Assembly (NCBI GenBank): GCA_964057225.1
Contig: OZ059897.1
Location: 12,958,001 to 13,022,000, forward strand
Direction: 5' to 3'
Origin: Auanema rhodensis
Taxonomy: Eukaryota; Animalia; Nematoda
Length of the DNA: 64,000 bases
The position numbers were made by a program, and so were the translations under genes. This document shows, piece after piece, positions 11,191 through 22,000 of this stretch. Within the stretch, counting starts at the first letter, position 1. Every line of letters starts with the position of its first letter. The notes below the pieces were generated by a model. That model made no database searches and was not told where the DNA came from. It saw only the letters and a program-made list of their open reading frames with translations.

Positions 11191-14100
11191 TTAATCTTTT
11201 CTTCTTTTTTCTCGTTCCTGTTGAGTAGGAGGAGGAGGTGTACCTTTCTGATGAAGTTGATCAATATAATCATCAAGAACTCTATCACGTTCAGTGGAAC
11301 TGTGCTCAGTCATACGCATCCATCTCTTATCATTCTAAAATTAAAACTACATAAAACAGATGCTTAACAGATATCAAACCTCAAGAATAGCGTAAATGTC
11401 TTTAATATGTTGCTCGTTTTCTTCCATCAAGCGCTTACTCTTATAAGTAATTATTTTAGTCTCCCTGAGAAGTTCTTTGAAATCTTTCACAATTTTATCG
11501 TGTCTTTCATCTTGCCATTCACGGAAATCTCTTTCAACTTTCTGAAAAACGAAAATGAAAAGAAACATAATAAGGTTATTCTTACTCTATCACTATTGCT
11601 AATAACTTTAGTGAACGTTTCTTCTTCATCCTGGATAATACGGCGAGCATCTTTCCATCTCATTTGGGTATTAATCTTTTGATGATCATCCAAAATGGCA
11701 TAGAAGGCAACACGCCGCTTTTTCTCCAAAACTCTGAAAGAAAAGCGAAATATAAAATATATTTATAAAAGGATTACCGGGAATGATCATTGAAAAGCTT
11801 TTCCTTTTTATCTTTGTCCAACAAATCACAGTTTGAATAACGTTCATCTTTTCTGAGCACACGACGAGCTTCATGCCACGAAATATCAGCTTGCTTTACC
11901 TAAATAAAAACATTGAAACAATATGAAGAACAAGTAAAATACCAAATCCATCATCAAAGCTCTGAATCTCTCTTCATGCTCGAGCAGACGATGACGCTCG
12001 CTTTCTTTATCACGTTCGCGCAATTGGTCACCCAATGTTGCCTCAACTTCTCTTTGACGAGCAGCAATAGCTTGTTCAGCAGCAAGTCGCTTCTCACGAG
12101 CTTGTTCTTCCTCGATGTCCTAAACAGATTTTAAACATTATTTTATACTAGATGTTCAAAAATTAATTCAAGGGTCATAATTCTTTCAGAATCGAAAGAC
12201 ACAATTTATAAAATAGCAAGTGCAAAAAATGAAAATGAAAAAGAAATCGAAAACAAAAACAAAATATATCATAAAAGGTAGACTTACAGAAAGACTTTCG
12301 TCACCCAGCTTATCGACATAATCTTTGAATAATTGTTCACGTGTGGAAGAACTATCTACATTCTGAATGAAAATGTTATTAACGAAGTATAAAAAAATCA
12401 CTTACTTTATAACGGGGGTCCTCCTCCAAAGATTTTTTAATATTAGACCATTTTGACTTGCGTGTTAAGCTAAGACTCACAGTATGCTCTTCCAAAAGAG
12501 TAACAAATTCTTTCTTTGCCTAACATAAATATTAATGAAAATGGTTGTACAATTTTTTTACCTTTTCACGTTTTTCTCTTTTCTCTTCTTTTTCTTTTTT
12601 GTGCAAATCGCCAACGAAGTCATTGAAAAGATCTTCCTTATCTCTCATTTTGTCAACAGACTTGAATCGGGGATCCTTACCAAATTTGGAAGAAAAAGAT
12701 GAAAAGGACGATCTGCATAGATAAATTGCGATTAAAACAGAATTTCTGACTAATTAATCCTTACTTTCCATGAAGCTCAGCTTCCTTTAATAACTCTGTG
12801 AACTTATCACGAGCTTCTTTTTGTTTTTTCTTTTTCTCTGCTCGTTCAACATCGGCTTTTTCACGGACATAAGCTTCGAAAGACTGAATAACAATTGTAA
12901 AACAATACGTATATGAAGAGAGCAAAACTCACGGCTCTTCTTTCAGTCGCACTAAGTAAAAGATAACGAGGATCAAACACGATTTTCGACAATTCCTTTT
13001 CAAATGTGCTTCCGGTAGAGACACCTTTTTCGGCTAACATTTCTTTAAACTGTCTGAGTCTATCTTCTAATGGCATCTGAAAAGGAAGAGATATTGAAAT
13101 ATAATTCTCAATGAAAAAACCTTTTCTCTCTCTCTTTGAGCCTGAAGTTCAGCTTGCACTGCTGGGTCAATGGGCTTTTCCAACATTTGTCGAACTGGTT
13201 TTTCTTTTTCTTTCTTAGATTGAGCCATAAGCGCTTCTTTCTTCTTTTCAGCTCTACTCTTCTTTTTTGGTGGTCCTCCAATTTCAGTATCGCTTTCAGA
13301 TTCCGATTCTCCCTCCTTCAGTTCTTCTAAAAACATAAATACAAATTGGAAATACAAGAAAAAAAACCTTTCTTAGTTTCTGGTGGTCGTGTTACGAGTA
13401 AGTCAATGTCTGGACGATTGTACAAATCTGGGGGGCGATCCCACACAGAACACTTTGTAGAAGGATTATAGAAGAATACCTTGCCATCTCCAGTCCATAC
13501 AACACACCAAGGAGTTCCAGGAACAGGAGTACTGCTGATTGGACGCGAAGAATCTTTTTTCTCATCTCTCTTTTTGGCTTGCTCATTGGGATCAAACATT
13601 TGACGTCGTTGCTAAAAAAAATTTCAATCAAGTTAGGCCTAAAATAAATCTTACTTGTTCTAGATATGCGTTGAGAGCCACATGGGCTTTAGCTTGTGCT
13701 TCCGCTACAGCACTAGACACAGGATCGTCGTTCACAACGGCCTTCTTCTCTTCTCTAGCACCTAAATGAGAAAGGGTAAGGTTGAAAAATAGAAAAAAAA
13801 AAGAAAGAAAAGTTTTTTACTTACCTTCACGCTCAGCAAATGCTTTAGGCTTTTCCCATGTGTTCTCTTGGGTAACGGAATTGAAATAGTATTTTCTACC
13901 ATCAGGAGCAGAAAACTCAGACCAAGCATCATCTGCACCAGAAGCCGCTGCTCCAGCCCCACCCATGTAATTCATCCCATATCCATACCCCGCTATAACA
14001 AAGTATTACTACAAACATTTTATTTCTAACATACCTCCGCCAGCTGTACCATTTTGTCCATAGCTAGCAGCAGCCGCATTATTTCGTTCTGAAATACAAA

Positions 14101-15556
14101 TTGTTAGAGAAACAAAAATTTAGTAAAATTTTCAGCCCCCCTCTCACAATTATATTATAATAAACGCGCTCTTGAAAAAATAAAGAAAAGGAAGAGAAAG
14201 GATAGACATTGGTTTGGTTGTGTCAAGCTGATAAGAGAAATAGACTTTACTCTATAGCGCTATCGAATGCAGTGAACCATGAGTACGATGATGTGGTAGA
14301 AACGGCTTCCTTCGGCAACCAAATTTCATTGTCGAGACTTTAAACAACTAAAGATTAGCTGACTGTAGAGGACAGAACGCGACAAATTTTGAAAACTTTT
14401 TGCTTTTTCAAGAACTTAGACCTTTCACCCAGTCTCCACATCCATCATTGTACGAATTCGTCATCGTCGCAAAAATTCAATAAGACCTCGAATAAAATCT
14501 TACCTGAATATCCTGAAAACCCCTACCAAGTTACGTTAACTAAAAAAACCTACAGGAATTGTAAATCTCACCTTCTTGCTCTAACCTTCCCTCTTCAGTA
14601 GCTCGCTGAACAAGGTCGGCTAGTTGTGTTTGATCGATCACCTTGGCGTTTGCAGGCTTCTCCCAAACTGTTTCCCTAGTAATGGCATGGTAATAATATT
14701 TCTTTGAGCTATCTTGAGTTTCCGTTTCCACCCAAAGCTCTTCGTCTCCTACGCAACCGGCTAACTAAAGAAAAAAGGAATAATAGACATACTGGTAAAA
14801 AAAACTAACTCTTTTAATTCTAGATTCCTGATCAGATTCTTGCGAAGCACCTTGAGATCCATAACCGAACCCTGCTGTATTGGCGGCAACCGACGTCGTA
14901 GATGCTGGAGTAGGGAAAAAAGTGCGGCCTGGCTGATAACCTGGTCTGGTTGGTGGAAAACCACGACCACGAAAATTAGGAGGAAAACCTCGTCCCCTCA
15001 TAAAAGGTGGAGCTAAAAATTTTAAGATAATATTAAACTGCAGATCAAAAATGACCTCCGCGACCCCTGAAGAATGGAGGTACACCAGGCGGCGCCCCAC
15101 GACCTCTAAATGCCCCGAACGATGGTCTAAAAGCACAAGTTCGATTCAAAAAAAATAGACCATGCTAGCACCTGAATCCTCCTCTACCCCCACGTTGTGC
15201 AGCGCCATCCCCTTCAGCACAATCTTCGCTATATTCACCTTCTCCGCTTCCATATTCATAATACTCATCACCATACTCTCCATCTCCTTCAGCGTACTCC
15301 TGACCATGATAGTCGCCTTGCTCCATGTCAACTAAAACCTTTGCGTAAAAAAACAAAATGCATATCCCCAAACAGCGGCAGGCAACATTATATTAATTAA
15401 AGGTGCTTCATAGACAAATTAAATACTAAAAAAAAAAGTACCAGGATAAGATTCATCATCAGGTCTCTGCTCTCCTGCTGCCTTCTCATGGTCGTTTGAA
15501 TCAGATATTCCATGTTCTCCTGGAGTGACCTGATTTTCGTTATTTTCGACCTCCAT
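11191..15556 (-). CDS. tcer-1: Transcription elongation regulator TCERG1/CA150 (WW and FF domains)
   Basis: Start MEVENNENQ at 15556, acidic then RGG-rich N-terminus. Three WW domains ([17 protein letters not shown]; [19 protein letters not shown]; [28 protein letters not shown]). FF repeats ([32 protein letters not shown]; [15 protein letters not shown]). Ends [15 protein letters not shown]. Confidence 0.95.
14504..14512 (-). CDS. Candidate 9-nt microexon (adds GYS) in the long TCERG1 intron 14089-14571
   Basis: ttttcag|GATATTCAG|gtaag. Consensus acceptor and donor, frame-preserving in the phase-1 intron. Confidence 0.65.
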
Positions 15557-15943
15557 TCTGGAACAAATTTATTAATTTCGAAATTATAAACCATTTCAAA
15601 TCAGAGGAATTTGTAAACGTTTATCAAACTTTAATTAGTACTTAAGTTTTATAAATAATAAATGCATCAATAAATATCCAATACAAAGAAAAATTAACTT
15701 TAGAGCCAAATTCCTTAATTCAAATCCGCCAAAATTCAAAAACATGACGTCAGTCTTTAAACGCTAGCGTCGCTGCGCTCATAGCAACCAGCACTAAGAG
15801 ATTTCGCATTGGTTCACTTTTTAGCTATAGGGCATGCCAGGTTGTTGCTTGTTCTAACAGGCTTTAATTTTCTTATGAAAGATTTCTGTTTTCCCAATTG
15901 TGAACCATTGTGTCCCAATTAAGAATAATATGCGGAAATTCAG
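15557..15943. promoter_or_regulatory. Bidirectional promoter between TCERG1 and ALG8-EndoV
   Basis: Divergent ATGs about 390 bp apart. Perfect CRE TGACGTCA (15745-15752), palindrome ACGCTAGCGT (15761-15770), E2F-like CCGCCAAA (~15726). Confidence 0.6.
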
Positions 15944-18900
15944 ATGTTTGGTAATTTACCATTATGGAACATAGTATGGATTACGATTTCTGTCTTGGTA
16001 GCAATTAAAGTTCTTCTAATACCATGTTATTCTTCAACAGATTTCGAGGTATATTTATTGCAAAAAAATGCGATAGATCCAAAACATTAAGGTCCATCGG
16101 AATTGGATGGCTATTACGTTTCAAAAGCCTTTAGATCAATGGTATTTTGAAAAAACTTCTGAATGGACCCTTGACTATCCTCCATTCTTTGCCTATTTTG
16201 AATGGGGTCTTGCTCAATTAGCTTCAAAGCTGAAATTAGATTCTATATTGCAAATAAGCAAGGAAGCAATAATAAATAAAGAAGTGCTGATATATCAAAG
16301 ACTTACAGTTATTTTCTGTGATTTCATATATGTGAGTTATCTTACTAATATGAAAGGAAATACAAAATTCTGCAGATGTTGTTGTGTTACCTGTTTGCTG
16401 CTAAGTATTTAGAAGTATCTGATACATTACCTAAGAAGATTATAGGAAGTATAAGGTTTAGTTTGGCTTCAGTATATGTTGATGATATTAAAATTAAGAG
16501 TGACCTTATTTGTACTTCTAGCAGCCAATTCAGGATTGGTTATGGTGGATAATATCCATTTCCAATATAACTCATTACTCACAGCTTTAGTTATTTTGTC
16601 AACATTACTTGTTAGTAATAGATGTTTCATTTTGGTTAGTTCAGTAAAATCAAAAGTCCAAGTACATCACAATTACAGGGAGCTCTCACTTTCTGTTCTC
16701 TTTTGAATTTCAAACATATTTATCTATATTATGGCCCTGCATTTGCTGTGTATTATTTGAAAAATTATTTCGAGCTTAAGCAATTTTCCGCATCAAAAAC
16801 GTTATCAACTGTATGGAAAGGTAAAACAAGATATGTAATACTTTAAAATAATGTTTTCTATTAATACAGGTGTGGTATTGGGTATTACCATGGTGTTACC
16901 ATTTTTAGCTAGTCTTGGTCCTTTCTTCTTAAAAGGTGGTGTTGAAGGTTTAATGCAAATTATTAGTCGGTTGTTCCCTGTTTCACGAGGTAAATAGAAT
17001 TCAAAAGGCTTGAATTATTTTTTTAGGCTTAACTCATGCCTATTGGGCTCCAAACTTTTGGGCATTATATAACTTTGTCGATATGGTTTTATATAGGATT
17101 TTAAAGGTGTTTAAAGTTGAAGGGCTCAAACCTTCATCATATAGTTCTGGCTTAGTACAGGTTCTCATATTGCTCCTGCTAAAATTTAGAATTTTCTTTT
17201 TTAGGAACATTCTCATTCTGTATTACCATCGATAACCCCTATCATATCACTGGCGTGCATTATATACAGTTTAGCTCCCTTCATTCTACTATTTTTACAA
17301 GTATTTGAGATAATAATATTTGGATTTTTTAATATATGCTGTATTTTTCAGAAGAAAAAGGATTTGTTTTCTCTTTACTTAGTAATATCAGCTTTATCTT
17401 TCTTTTACTTTGGATATCATGTACATGAGAAAGCTTTACTACTAATTTCTATCCCTCTTATTATAGTCTCACTAACAGTAATTTTAAATTATTAATAATT
17501 TGAATGAAATTCATATATTTCAGAAACCGAAATTCATTCCTGTATCAATTATGTTGTCAACCATTACATCATTTTCATTGTTTCCCTTATTGTTCACTAC
17601 TTTCGAAATTTTCATCAAATATGGTTTAGCTGGTGCTTACCTTTCACTATCTCTTTTTTTGTACAGGTATCTATTTCTCAAATTACTTAATAACTCTAAA
17701 ATACGATTTTAAAGTTAACAATCAATTAGTTAGCATAGAATTTCATTTTTCAGTCAGTCTTATAAATTGCGCATACATCATTTCTTGCCAACATGGGTTA
17801 TCTTGTACATTACCGGCTTAGGAATTGTGGAGTTCTATAATTCATTTGTACATAAGGTAAATGGTTTTAGTTTCATCATATTATTTGGTGATTATTAAGT
17901 ATTTATTCGACAATGGATTGGAATTTTTCCCCCTTATGATGATTTCGGTGTATAATGCTATTGGAGTATCTATATGTTATGTTTGGATTTTGAAACTCTC
18001 AATAGAAGAGGATTCTCTCATATTCTTAAAAAAGAAGAAATGTGAAGTTCGAGAGGTATCAAAATAAAAAAATATATATTATTTTTTCAATTTTTAGGCT
18101 CTAATAAGAGATGGAGCTTTCCCTGTTCAGTCTGTCGAATCAATTGAAGAAGTTCAAATCATTGGAGGAGTAGACATATCAACATCAAAAATTAATCCTG
18201 AATTAGGAATAGCAACTTTATCTATTTATAGTTTTCCTGATTTCAAGGTATTTTCTTTATGCTTGCTGCTGCATTCCAAATCTGTATTTAAGCTACTAAT
18301 GACTTACGATGAATCTGTCTTTATTACTGAACCTTACATCAATGATTATCTTGCATTAAGGCTTGTTAAATATATTTTTCTTTATAATTTCTCATTATAG
18401 GGAAGCTTTACCAGTATCTGAAATGGTTAGAAGTTTTGTTTCTAAATATCCGAACCTTCGACCTGATATTATTCTATGTGATGGAAACGGCGAATTCCAT
18501 TCAAGAGGTCTATCTAATAAATTTTTAGTTTTTATTTAACATAATTAGGATGTGGTGTTGCTTGTCATATAGGAGCATTATCCGGAATTCCAACGATAGG
18601 TGTAGCGAAAAAGTTGAATATATCACTTTTAAAACACCTAGGAGCTAATGATAAAACAATTGAAGAGGCTGAAAAGGTAGATATTTATTCTGTATATTTC
18701 TCATAATAACTTTATGCTTGTAGTTCATAGAAAAAGTTGCAAATGAGAAAAGCAGCGGCTTTGTTGCTTTCGATTTTATCAGGCCGACAGTGCTGAATAT
18801 TATCCGCTCTGAAGGATCAAAGGTAAACCACAATTTAATATTGTGTTTTCATATAGTTCATAGATGCCTTTATTTGTATCGGCTGGGTATGGTATCGATC

Positions 18901-19064
18901 TCGATTTGGCAACAGAAATAGTTATCAAAAGTGCAAAAACAAAAGTTTGTGAACCTATTAGGGCGGTAAGTTTATCCACCAAAAATTTGAAACATTCGAA
19001 TGAGAGTCCATTTCAGGCTGACTTATTGTCACGTCAAAAGATTCGAGAGTTTTATGACGATTAA
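15944..19064 (+). CDS. ALG8: ALG8 alpha-1,3-glucosyltransferase fused in frame to a C-terminal Endonuclease V domain (from 18098)
   Basis: ALG8 motifs [69 protein letters not shown] and FGYHVHEKA. After the phase-0 intron 18056-18097 come EndoV motifs [59 protein letters not shown] and EPIRAADLLSR. Confidence 0.9.
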
Positions 19065-22000
19065 CATTGTTAATCTTTTTTTCATTGTATATAGAAATTT
19101 TATTTATTATTGTTCCTTTATTAGACCATTAATTGCGTGTAAGAGTCTGAATTTATTTCATTCCTGTTGTTGCTATTGGGTTTCTGTTACATAAACTGAT
19201 TTTTTGTTAGTTTAAAAGTTCGATCAAAAACTATGGAAATGAAAAATATTAAAGCGCAATGAGCAATAGAAAAAACTAAATGTTGATCGGGTACTATGAG
19301 GAGACCAGATGGTAACATTTCATTAATATCTTATAGTTATTTGTTTTATGAGAGAAAATGTGAAAACCACACTGCTAAGATATCTGACTAGTCTAACAAC
19401 AAACTGACAATTTTTATTAATTGGATTGGAGTGTTTCTTATTTCTAAGTTTGTTTTAACAAAATTTAAAGTATTTCCTCAAATTGTTATCTTTTTTTGCA
19501 ATCTAACAATATTTTAAGAGCAAAATCTTATTATTTCCTTGATTTTTCCAAAACATGCCGACAATGAGTTTTTGAGCCTCATAAATTTAAAACCTTTACC
19601 AATTTGGCTGTTGAAATTGAAATTAAAACCACTACTAATTTCCGGTTCAACAGTAAGTTATGTTGAGAAAAGAAAGACGAAAACGCAACGAAAAAATACA
19701 AACCGACGAAATGATAAATAATGCATAAATTGACTACATCCGTTGAACTAGTCGAGTTGCATCAAATGATACACATAGGTTTAAGAAGTATCAAAACTTT
19801 TTAAAACTGAAGGATTATTTATAGAATATTCGAAATGTTTGTTCATTTCCCTCCGCCGTTTAATTTTGTTTTAATTGTTTGTAAAACAACATAACAGATT
19901 GTAGAAAAAGCATAGAACGATGTGTTACAGCTGTAGCTTTAAGATTAATTTTTCGATATTAAACAAGTCAGAGTCTAAATATTTCTTGGCTCCATTTCAT
20001 TTAACTACTATTCGAAAATATTCTCAAGAGAAATAGAAAGTTAAGATTTTGTAGATGAATGACTTAAAGTCTTTTAATATGCTTATATAAAATCTTAACT
20101 ACATTGAAAATGCCTTTTAATTTAATTGAAAGCCTGTAAAATATATTTGGAAAGCAACAGCTGGCTACTTTGAAAATGAAACCTTAATAGTTTGGTTATT
20201 GGTAAGATATAGGAACTTGCGTGATAGATCATCATAAGATTCGTTAGACTCTATTGAAAAAAGATGACGATGCTGTGACTAAAAGTCTCCGTAACTTTCA
20301 TCGTATATCATTTTCTAATAATAATTATCATCAACATTGTCATTTAATTTATTTGAAATATGCAGTGTCAAGAATATGGAAGAAATTTCGAGAATACATT
20401 TTCTTGAATATGTGTTCTTTTAATCGTTTTTGATACATAGGTTGAGATCTTGGCTCTAAAACTTAATATGAGCATATTTCTTTGAACATTCGTATTTCTT
20501 AATTTGCTAATACGTGAATATATACATAAGAAGGCGTTTTTACGTGAAATTCATTGGAAAATCGGTATGCGCATAAAGCGGTTGAGTTTTCATTTCTTTA
20601 TCCCATTTTCGCGATTTATGTTCTGCAGAATTGAGCATTTTCCATTTTAAAGCTAAAAGCGGTCATTTATATTGAAATATTCTACAAGAACAGATGCTTA
20701 GACAGTGAATAAGGAATTTCAATAGGAAGCTAGACTTAGTTCCCGTCTTTCAGGAGACAGGTAGACTTCATAAATCATCAAATGTCCCAACGTATGCTGG
20801 AACCAGCTTGCAGGAAGTTGTTTCGCAAAGATTCTGAATTTAGACATATGATATTTATTGGCAAGATATAATTGCCGACGGTCGTTGTCGTCCAACGGAA
20901 ATCTTGTCGTCGTTGCTCCATGTTGGAGCTGGCTTCACCTTTCTTTTTTTTTATTTCAAACAATTACCGTATATAGTCATACTTAAAATTTGCGTTATGT
21001 TACCGGTGCAAAGTTGTATGTGATGTGACCTAAATATTTAATTCAGCAATATCTGAACTTCATTAAGTTCAAGAATGTTTGCCAGTTAAATACAACATTC
21101 ATCTCAAAATGTTGAAGTAATAATATAATTCTAAAGAAAAGAAGAACGAGCAATAAAAGAATCTGCGGAAAAACTTCAAAGTACGGGGAAATGATCAACC
21201 ATAGTGCATTTATCTCCGAGCAACTGATGTATCAGTTAGAATTCTAAAGGCATGACATTAATTAATATAGTCAGTTTTTCAAAACTTTAAATTTTGTCCA
21301 GATGTGCCATCTTTCTCTTTGCTTTTTTTTATTTTTCCGTATCGTATTGAGTTAGGAATTAACAATTTCAGTATTATCTGTTTAACCACTGTTCCACAAA
21401 GTTTGTTTGGTATATCCATTAACATTGATAGTCTTATTTTGCATATTCATTTCATCGTTCAAAATTTCATGTTTTATAGCATTCTCATTTCAAATATTCA
21501 GTTCTCTTACTTAGTTTACTGTTTCCAAAATGATAAAAAAAGAAAATGGCAGGCCATATGAACTGACTTTTCGGAATATGACCGGTTCAATATAGTCTGG
21601 CGTGTTCTTCAATTTCGTCAAAAATGCATAAAGTGACAAGAACGGCTTCTCATCTATAGGTCCGTTTTTGGTAAGCTAAAGTCACACAACTTCGAAGTGT
21701 GTCAATTTTGATGATAAGCAAGCGGCACAGAGAGAAAACGACGTCGTTGCTTCACAATATGCATATGCATTGACAAATGCTTGTCTCATTTCCCGGACTT
21801 CATTTGACTTAAAACTCATTCGGTTTCATCGCTGTATCAAAACGATAAACCATGGCATATATTTTTCCAATTTTCAATCATTTTAAGTCACATTTGATTT
21901 AATAACATATAGTTAACTAATGAAGAAACATTTAACGGTTTGATTGTAGATATTTAGATTTCATGTTTTTCCTTCAAAGCTTGAATTATTCTAAAAAGAA

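Follow-up and report, generated by a model that had tools for sequence, protein, structure and literature searches.

An ALG8-endonuclease V fusion gene in the nematode Auanema rhodensis: one mRNA for an ER glucosyltransferase with a predicted cytosolic nuclease domain

ALG8 attaches the second glucose to the dolichol-linked precursor of N-glycans inside the endoplasmic reticulum (ER) lumen. Eukaryotic endonucleases V (EndoVs) are described as inosine-specific ribonucleases (PMC3741635). In the enzyme of T. maritima, D43, E89, D110 and H214 make up the metal-binding active site (PMC3025561); H214 corresponds to D210 of E. coli and, together with K139, holds the phosphate at the nick (PMC4650699). 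Nematode proteins that combine ALG8 with EndoV are already annotated in public databases. For instance, there are records for C. elegans (algn-8/C08H9.3, by name transfer), P. pacificus ('algn-8') and A. caninum ('deoxyribonuclease V'), and the record of H. contortus names both parts ('Glycosyltransferase and Endonuclease V domain containing protein'). They have the same two Pfam domains, in the same order and with the same seam, as the gene described here, which is a new orthologue from Auanema rhodensis. No paper discussing the ALG8-EndoV fusion was found in our literature search, and PMC11995373, a candidate for a co-mention of EndoV and ALG8, was rejected because it holds only human ALG8 in an editing-site table.

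The window is a stretch of 64,000 nucleotides (nt) of contig OZ059897.1 (assembly GCA_964057225.1, positions 12,958,001 to 13,022,000, forward strand), and its own coordinates are used throughout. The ALG8-EndoV gene lies at 15944..19064 on the plus strand and has 19 exons, with 760 codons plus the stop and no internal stop. The exon model was built from open frames and splice consensus, and the domains were checked with Pfam. We regard it as probable that the locus is best explained overall as one gene with one mRNA and one ALG8-EndoV protein, whose likely active nuclease is on the ER's cytosolic face. This single protein of 760 amino acids (aa) would consist of an ALG8 glucosyltransferase, its last membrane helix, a loop of about 5 residues and a complete eukaryote-type EndoV, and its likeliest activity would be cutting inosine-containing RNA near the ER. 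New here are the confirmation of the fused mRNA by RNA data, the location of the seam within an exon, the test for selection, the age assigned to the fusion and the evidence of a secondary loss in clade III.

The RNA evidence consisted of assembled contigs from runs X1-X4, that is, four samples of one study on one organism. In each run, about 51% of the words sampled from 15800-19300 were present, close to the share expected of spliced RNA, and each run gave a single contig of 2403-2437 nt with zero mismatches to the window. The contigs started at 15942 in three of the four runs (slightly further in for X3), and all of them ended at 19186-19209. The 15 joints listed, of 18 in all, match the first 15 modelled introns without exception, including a skip of 42 nt between 18055 and 18098, and 18055 was cis-spliced to 18098 in all four contigs. 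The contigs lack all 18 introns and are therefore derived from spliced RNA, and the words that span 18055 and 18098 require reads across this junction, for which the earlier note on this DNA had proposed a check in RNA. Thus, there is one gene with a single fused ALG8-EndoV mRNA. No RNA evidence of an ALG8-only form that retains intron 12 was found in the contigs of X1-X4; such retention would lead to a stop after three codons (18056-18067; ...REVSK, then stop) and to an ALG8-only protein of 530 aa.

The features at the seam between the two parts are as follows.
18002..18055 (+), seam, aa 510-527: short loop and start of EndoV helix alpha-1, inside exon 12
18029-18040 (+), run of four lysines (KKKK), aa 519-522
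18056..18097 (+), phase-0 GT-AG intron of 42 nt within the EndoV N-terminal helix region, supported by the RNA contigs

Exon 12 (17900-18055) joins in frame to exon 13 (18098-18247), which starts with ALIRDG..., and Ancylostoma caninum likewise has an intron here, which falls between aa 530 and 531 of its orthologue P0163. In a joint alignment of fused proteins, unfused ALG8 and stand-alone EndoV, the ALG8 proteins of other animals end 5-20 residues past the last membrane helix; in the fused proteins, a basic and amphipathic stretch follows, which is aligned to the N-terminal helix of stand-alone EndoV. In a profile of 35 fused orthologues (A1), the match to human EndoV begins with its residue 7 at profile position 516, which is 12-15 residues ahead of the point where the exon homologous to exon 12 ends. 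In addition, an AlphaFold2 model was made for P0163 with alignment A1 (predicted local distance difference test, pLDDT, 88.3; predicted TM-score, pTM, 0.87). It predicts a helix at 487-512, a loop at 513-517 and a helix at 518-534, all with pLDDT >85, followed by the EndoV sheet. Because the EndoV homology and the predicted helix alpha-1 begin before the end of exon 12, the fusion point falls within exon 12, and it is the EndoV domain that the intron 18056-18097 interrupts. Furthermore, EndoV is not a separate gene, since its first helix shares exon 12 with the last ALG8 membrane helix, about 5 residues past it. No in-frame ATG was found in the spliced frame from the last ALG8 membrane helix to the first catalytic Asp, and the nearest upstream Met is inside the helix.

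These results agree with what the earlier note had read from the letters: that the last ALG8 exon runs in frame into EndoV across a 42-nt GT-AG intron, that no in-frame ATG precedes the first catalytic Asp, and that EndoV cannot easily be a separate gene. Its coordinates for the intron (18056-18097), the D of GVD (18173-18175) and the D of DGNG (18480-18482) were exact. However, its suggestion that KKKK recalls a dilysine tail did not hold. The run is internal, 240 residues from the C-terminus of the 760-aa protein, and is not conserved in the orthologues; therefore, it cannot serve as a dilysine retrieval signal, for which lysines are needed at -3 and -4 or -5 from a free C-terminus (the protein ends with ...REFYDD). 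A better reading of KKKK is that it forms the basic beginning of the EndoV N-terminal helix.

The features of the EndoV domain, with residue conservation judged in 37 fused proteins aligned to stand-alone EndoVs, are as follows.
18098..19061 (+), EndoV domain body, aa 528-760, exons 13-19 (Pfam, PDB sequence matches and fold)
18173..18175 (+), catalytic Asp553 in GGVD, equivalent to T. maritima D43; conserved except for one gap
18335..18337 (+), wedge Tyr592 in the PYI motif, equivalent to T. maritima Y80; invariant
18402..18404 (+), catalytic Glu601 in RE, equivalent to T. maritima E89; invariant
18480..18482 (+), catalytic Asp627 in DGNG, equivalent to T. maritima D110; conserved except for one evidently mis-modelled orthologue
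18498..18500 (+), His633 in FHSRG, equivalent to T. maritima H116 (substrate binding); invariant
18608..18610 (+), Lys656 in GVAKK, equivalent to T. maritima K139; invariant
18888..18890 (+), Tyr720 in SAGY, at the position of the His of the usual EndoV 'GH' motif
19020..19022 (+), Asp747 in RAADL, fourth active-site residue, equivalent to T. maritima H214 and E. coli D210; conserved except for one gap

Exons 13, 15, 16 and 18 match consecutive parts of the Pfam profile Endonuclease_5 (PF04493), and exon 16 alone scores 31.5 bits (cut-off 23.4). Single EndoV exons match the EndoVs of Ciona, mouse and human in a PDB sequence search, and profile A1 matches 18 PDB EndoV sequences with E from 1e-50 to 1e-24 (1e-47 to 1e-50 for Ciona, mouse and human). 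The predicted fold is RNase H-like: in Foldseek, the P0163 model matches mouse, Ciona and human EndoV with a target TM-score (TMt) of 0.79-0.85, above bacterial EndoV. Among the fold matches is PDB 6OZI, the D234N mutant of Ciona EndoV, and we take this D234 to lie in the motif of Asp747. The wedge motif is of the PYxP type (P591-Y592-I593-N594 in the window). At the fourth catalytic position, a loss had been considered because SAGY stands where T. maritima has SPGH; this was rejected, since H214 is equivalent to E. coli D210 (PMC4650699), which belongs to the R-x-A-D/H motif and hence corresponds to the conserved Asp747; Tyr720 takes the place of another conserved His. The catalytic set that the earlier note had called intact is thus conserved, residue by residue, across about 37 fused orthologues, and its 'D of ADL' is Asp747.

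To estimate selection, dN/dS (the ratio of nonsynonymous to synonymous substitution rates) was calculated by the Nei-Gojobori method between A. caninum (L003) and A. ceylanicum (L004) over 762 codon pairs without a stop. The coding exons of A. caninum were placed by exact mapping, and the locus of A. ceylanicum was aligned with blastn. The results for each partition are as follows.
ALG8 partition: dN/dS 0.117 (95% bootstrap interval 0.079-0.160)
EndoV partition: dN/dS 0.060 (95% bootstrap interval 0.032-0.107)
Seam partition (40 codons): dN/dS 0, with dN = 0 (bootstrap not informative)

The dS was about 0.5 in this comparison and 0.75 in the seam. The EndoV domain is under strong purifying selection, and the relaxed selection that the earlier note had named as a ground for refuting its reading was not found. 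Because the metal-binding and wedge residues are all kept under this selection, the EndoV domain is most likely an active Mg2+-dependent nuclease. We also observed that the locus of A. ceylanicum (KE125167.1, 8001-17040) has an intact fused frame, yet it is annotated as separate short proteins. Moreover, its part coding for aa ~364-478 is present in three copies in the assembly, one of them inverted (11683-12139, 12591-13039 and 14908-14714).

Homologues were searched with single exons as seeds (exon 2 first) and then with the orthologues found. Ten representative proteins of 728-813 aa were collinear with the whole 760-aa model, and the highest identity to the window protein among the proteins found was 54.5% (Necator). 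Both Pfam domains, Alg6_Alg8 and Endonuclease_5, occur together in more than 35 nematode species. In clade V, the fused protein was found in Caenorhabditis japonica, nigoni, briggsae, brenneri, bovis, angaria and auriculariae, and also in Haemonchus, Ancylostoma, Necator, Cooperia, Pristionchus ('algn-8'), Diploscapter and Mesorhabditis. In clade IV, it was found in Steinernema, Strongyloides, Panagrellus, Bursaphelenchus, Aphelenchoides ('Protein C08H9.3 a'), Ditylenchus, Meloidogyne, Heterodera and Globodera. The earlier note had suspected a fusion conserved in the lineage rather than a new one, and this is what the records 'algn-8 [Pristionchus pacificus]' and 'Protein C08H9.3 a [Aphelenchoides avenae]' and the at least six fused Caenorhabditis species show. 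In addition, a Plectus sambesii protein bears both domains, and two further fused proteins, P0125 (ERR14904642) and P0004 (SRR30809094), have uninterrupted open reading frames (ORFs) on transcript contigs (L001 and L002), from which alone they come.

The ALG8 proteins of clade III are unfused and have ~535-540 aa, as in non-nematodes; they were found in Brugia, Loa, Onchocerca, Ascaris, Toxocara, Anisakis, Enterobius and Thelazia. With seven other animals as the root, the ALG8-domain tree placed P0004 and P0125 outside a group of clades III, IV and V with 99% support. When all fused sequences were forced into one clade without clade III, the tree was rejected (difference in log-likelihood 63.7, approximately unbiased (AU) test, P = 0.0008), for a group that had been defined after the tree had been seen. 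In the EndoV-domain tree, P0125 grouped with Plectus, and the domains of clades IV and V formed one 99% clade on a long stem. Based on the ALG8 tree, the AU test and the EndoV tree, we conclude that the fusion arose once, before the split of Plectida and Rhabditida, and persisted in clades IV and V, where the sequence changed faster; the ALG8 tree and the AU test also point to a secondary loss of EndoV in clade III. The clade III tails, e.g. ...KATCICERKLKR in Brugia, are still similar to the beginning of the fused helix, e.g. ...QKATCRLREQLIRD in C. nigoni, and they share with it a Cys that is missing in the Plectus-like proteins and in stand-alone EndoVs. This resemblance in a short motif is consistent with a loss by truncation.

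An archaeal origin of EndoV by horizontal transfer was also considered, as a word search with the hookworm domain gave mostly thaumarchaeal EndoVs. It was rejected because the EndoV of P0125 is about 50% identical to vertebrate ENDOV and because, in the EndoV tree, the domains from nematodes group with eukaryotic EndoVs and are separated from the archaeal outgroup. Judged by these comparisons, the EndoV domain is of ordinary animal descent.

A few records need separate mention. Aphelenchoides has two unfused ALG8 paralogues, P0031 (523 aa) and P0212 (533 aa), which adjoin the fused copy on the tree; apparently, they stem from a duplication in this lineage, after which the EndoV part was lost by truncation. 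Within its positions 1-60, L001 (a Logan contig of ERR14904642) opens with the remnant of a Nextera adapter and then has three units of GCCTAA, which is the telomere repeat of nematodes (TTAGGC); this is probably a chimeric end. Three over-long models, P0173 (Diploscapter, 1213 aa), P0180 (Panagrolaimus, 1276 aa) and P0201 (Globodera, 960 aa), add unrelated domains (purple acid phosphatase, COQ6 monooxygenase and SPRY) to ALG8-EndoV and are probably gene-model merges. Split or partial annotations of the gene, such as those in A. ceylanicum, C. tropicalis and Teladorsagia, are errors.

Several points weigh against a fused protein with an active nuclease in the cytosol. First, the RNA support comes from the contigs of a single study, which is compatible with minor isoforms or with molecules that are not full-length and leaves room for an ALG8-only isoform with intron 12 retained or for an internally trans-spliced form. 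Second, the structure was predicted for P0163, which is 54% identical to the window protein, and the 14-helix count used below is our own reading of the AlphaFold2 secondary structure, guided by the ALG6 topology. Third, our literature search found no activity, localisation or topology experiment on any ALG8-EndoV member. Fourth, the widely conserved His of the 'GH' motif is replaced (Y720 in the window): its position holds Y, F, L, W, N, T or G in clades IV and V, and the His is kept in the deep-branching fused P0004 and P0125 and in most stand-alone EndoVs. Moreover, the EndoVs of clades IV and V lie on a long stem branch (0.75) and are 23-33% identical to bird ENDOV, versus 42-49% for the Plectus-like fused proteins. 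Because of the long stem, the low identity and the replaced His, the specificity or activity of EndoV may have changed in clades IV and V.

The same accelerated stem and variable His would suit a real fusion whose EndoV is no longer an inosine nuclease and serves ALG8 as a cytosolic module with a role in structure, regulation or RNA binding. AlphaFold2 also packs EndoV tightly on the membrane enzyme, with a linker of five residues (pTM 0.87), which could restrict substrate access. Nevertheless, about 37 species keep all five active-site residues together with the wedge Tyr and H633, a scaffold needs no metal ligands, and the dN/dS of EndoV is 0.06. Thus, we consider a nuclease turned scaffold unlikely, though it survives better than any other alternative to the active, tethered enzyme.

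It is still less likely that the fusion is cleaved after translation to free a soluble cytosolic EndoV, and that the fusion serves merely for co-expression. This proposal draws on the fact that stand-alone EndoV is the rule in other animals, and it has no direct support. However, the linker of only about 5 residues is flanked by two helices that are predicted with confidence, a protease-type motif is not apparent at the seam, the two Ancylostoma species show zero non-synonymous changes there, and co-expression in nematodes is usually achieved via operons.

The side of the membrane on which EndoV lies depends on the ALG8 part, whose features are as follows.
15944..18001 (+), ALG8 glucosyltransferase part, aa 1-509, exons 1-12a (Pfam, fold and helix mapping)
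16040..16042 (+), Asp33 in the STDFEVHRNW motif of the first lumenal loop, putative catalytic base (alignment A1)
17924-18001 (+), membrane helix 14, aa 484-509, end of the ALG8 part

Exons 2, 4, 5, 7 and 9 cover positions 19-360 of the Pfam profile Alg6_Alg8 (PF03155) in order, with 108.6 bits for exon 2 (cut-off 25). The P0163 model matches yeast ALG6 (6SNH) in Foldseek with TMt 0.79 over 528 columns, and profile A1 matches the yeast sequence with E 5e-51. The yeast protein is only 22% identical; the near relatives are all named alpha-1,3-glucosyltransferase or ALG8 (Glc1Man9GlcNAc2 acceptor), and the window protein falls within nematode clade V in the ALG8-domain tree with animal ALG8 as outgroup. 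By this orthology the gene is an ALG8 rather than an ALG6 orthologue. The ALG8 part is predicted to be a polytopic ER membrane glucosyltransferase that uses Dol-P-Glc (GT57). The Asp expected in the lumenal catalytic loop of a GT-C fold is present as D33, its column (D36 of P0163) is at least 90% conserved in alignment A1, and its catalytic role is presumed from work on ALG6.

To count the helices, the AlphaFold2 helices of P0163 were read as 14 membrane helices, and residues 288-306, a conserved region, were assigned to a long lumenal loop. This agrees with ALG6, which reportedly has 14 helices with both ends in the cytosol. The ALG8 part reads best with its N-terminus on the cytosolic side and 14 membrane helices. 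EndoV in the ER lumen is a very improbable alternative, which draws on an ambiguous helix count (15 long helices if 288-306 is counted) and on a crude Kyte-Doolittle hydropathy scan that left the membrane helices uncountable. However, the short loops predicted to be cytosolic have 10 K/R versus 1 in the short lumenal loops, as the positive-inside rule would demand of a cytosolic EndoV, and the 14-helix model would place every invariant polar motif on the lumenal side together with the catalytic first loop. In addition, the unfused ALG8 proteins of Ascaris and Toxocara end in KXKXX-type tails, a signal that functions only in the cytosol, and no nucleic-acid substrate is known in the lumen. From the 14-helix topology and the positive-inside rule we infer, as the earlier note had proposed, that EndoV is on the ER's cytosolic face, about 5 residues from the membrane.

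Two adjacent genes or an operon, with EndoV mRNA trans-spliced at 18098, are scarcely credible: nematodes do have operons and internal trans-splice acceptors, and the acceptor at 18097 (TTTTTAG) would suit, but 18055 is cis-spliced to 18098 in every one of the four contigs, an in-frame ATG ahead of the catalytic Asp is missing, helix alpha-1 is within exon 12, and other species have fused ORFs without interruption, both on transcript contigs and in more than 35 annotated genomes. The remaining features of the gene are as follows.
15936..15943 (+), 3' splice-acceptor consensus AAATTCAG, immediately 5' of the start codon (from the sequence)
15944-16048, 16092-16331, 16376-16455, 16499-16634, 16679-16820 (+), exons 1-5
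16870-16989, 17027-17160, 17205-17300, 17352-17477, 17524-17666 (+), exons 6-10
17754-17856, 17900-18055, 18098-18247, 18293-18360, 18401-18507 (+), exons 11-15
18549-18676, 18724-18822, 18864-18965, 19017-19064 (+), exons 16-19
18361..18400 (+), GC-AG intron of 40 nt that splits the codon of Arg600 in the EndoV 'RE' motif (frame and RNA contigs)
19065..19209 (+), 3' untranslated region (UTR), up to the RNA contig ends at 19186-19209
19190-19195 (+), CATAAA, a variant poly(A) signal in the 3' UTR, marking a putative poly(A) site (from the sequence)

The 18 introns have 37-87 nt each; 17 are GT-AG and one is GC-AG. The border of the latter is the sole choice that preserves the frame (giving ...ALREALP), and the RNA contigs skip 40 nt there, with 3 nt of slack in placement. 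The G+C content is 31% in the AT-rich region of the gene and 29% in the whole window. The nematode-type acceptor before the start codon is likely the trans-splice site of the gene; one RNA contig has 5 extra unaligned letters at its 5' end. Upstream, there is a multi-exon TCERG1-like gene on the minus strand (~11900-15560) with WW_TCERG1, WW and FF domains. Its 5' end is near 15556, and ~390 bp separate it from the 5' end of ALG8-EndoV. The two genes are divergent, and therefore ALG8-EndoV is not a downstream member of an operon.

It is possible, although we doubt it on balance, that the fusion is a functional tether, which would confine an active inosine ribonuclease to the RNAs of the ER and shield the bulk of cytosolic tRNA. 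Its targets could then be I34-tRNAs, or mRNAs edited by ADAR, at ribosomes bound to the membrane; most nematodes, namely Plectida together with clades IV and V and thus also C. elegans, would tether EndoV, and ascarids and filariae would have shed the nuclease. A link between N-glycosylation and RNA surveillance through action on edited mRNA or I34-tRNA, as the earlier note imagined, is speculation. The in vivo role of eukaryotic EndoV is unclear, and the fusion gives the nuclease a defined cellular address, likely for hundreds of millions of years. Strong purifying selection has maintained the arrangement in the phylum to which C. elegans belongs, which makes it testable where EndoV acts, on which inosine RNAs, and what follows if it is untethered or inactivated, and the secondary loss in filarial and ascarid worms offers a natural comparison. 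If true, a functional tether would be a new and genetically tractable case of compartmentalised inosine-RNA surveillance.

Compared with the annotated nematode ALG8-EndoV proteins, the window protein is collinear over 760 aa with 36-54% identity, and the intron position is common to A. caninum; it differs in coming from another species and in being no more than 54.5% identical to any protein found. The stand-alone EndoVs of human (4NSP), mouse (6OZJ) and Ciona (6OZH) share with it the RNase H-like fold, the D/E/D/K/D site, the wedge Tyr and the GVACH motif. However, unlike them, the window domain is predicted to be anchored to a 14-helix ER protein by a linker of ~5 residues. It is ~30% identical to vertebrate ENDOV, has Tyr in place of the 'GH' His, and lacks the C-terminal extension of the vertebrate enzymes. 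As in ALG8 and ALG6 (GT57, GT-C; yeast 6SNH), Alg6_Alg8 covers the N-terminal 510 aa with conserved lumenal motifs and a fold match at TMt 0.79. The ALG8 proteins of other animals and of clade III end ~5-20 residues past the last membrane helix, whereas the window protein has 250 more residues. Finally, IRE1 offers a functional analogy only. There is no relation in sequence or fold, its RNase, a KEN domain under the control of a kinase, responds to stress in the lumen, and nothing points to ALG8 regulating EndoV. What the two would have in common, if the cytosolic placement is true, is an ER-anchored endoribonuclease that faces the cytosol and to which ER-bound RNAs are accessible.

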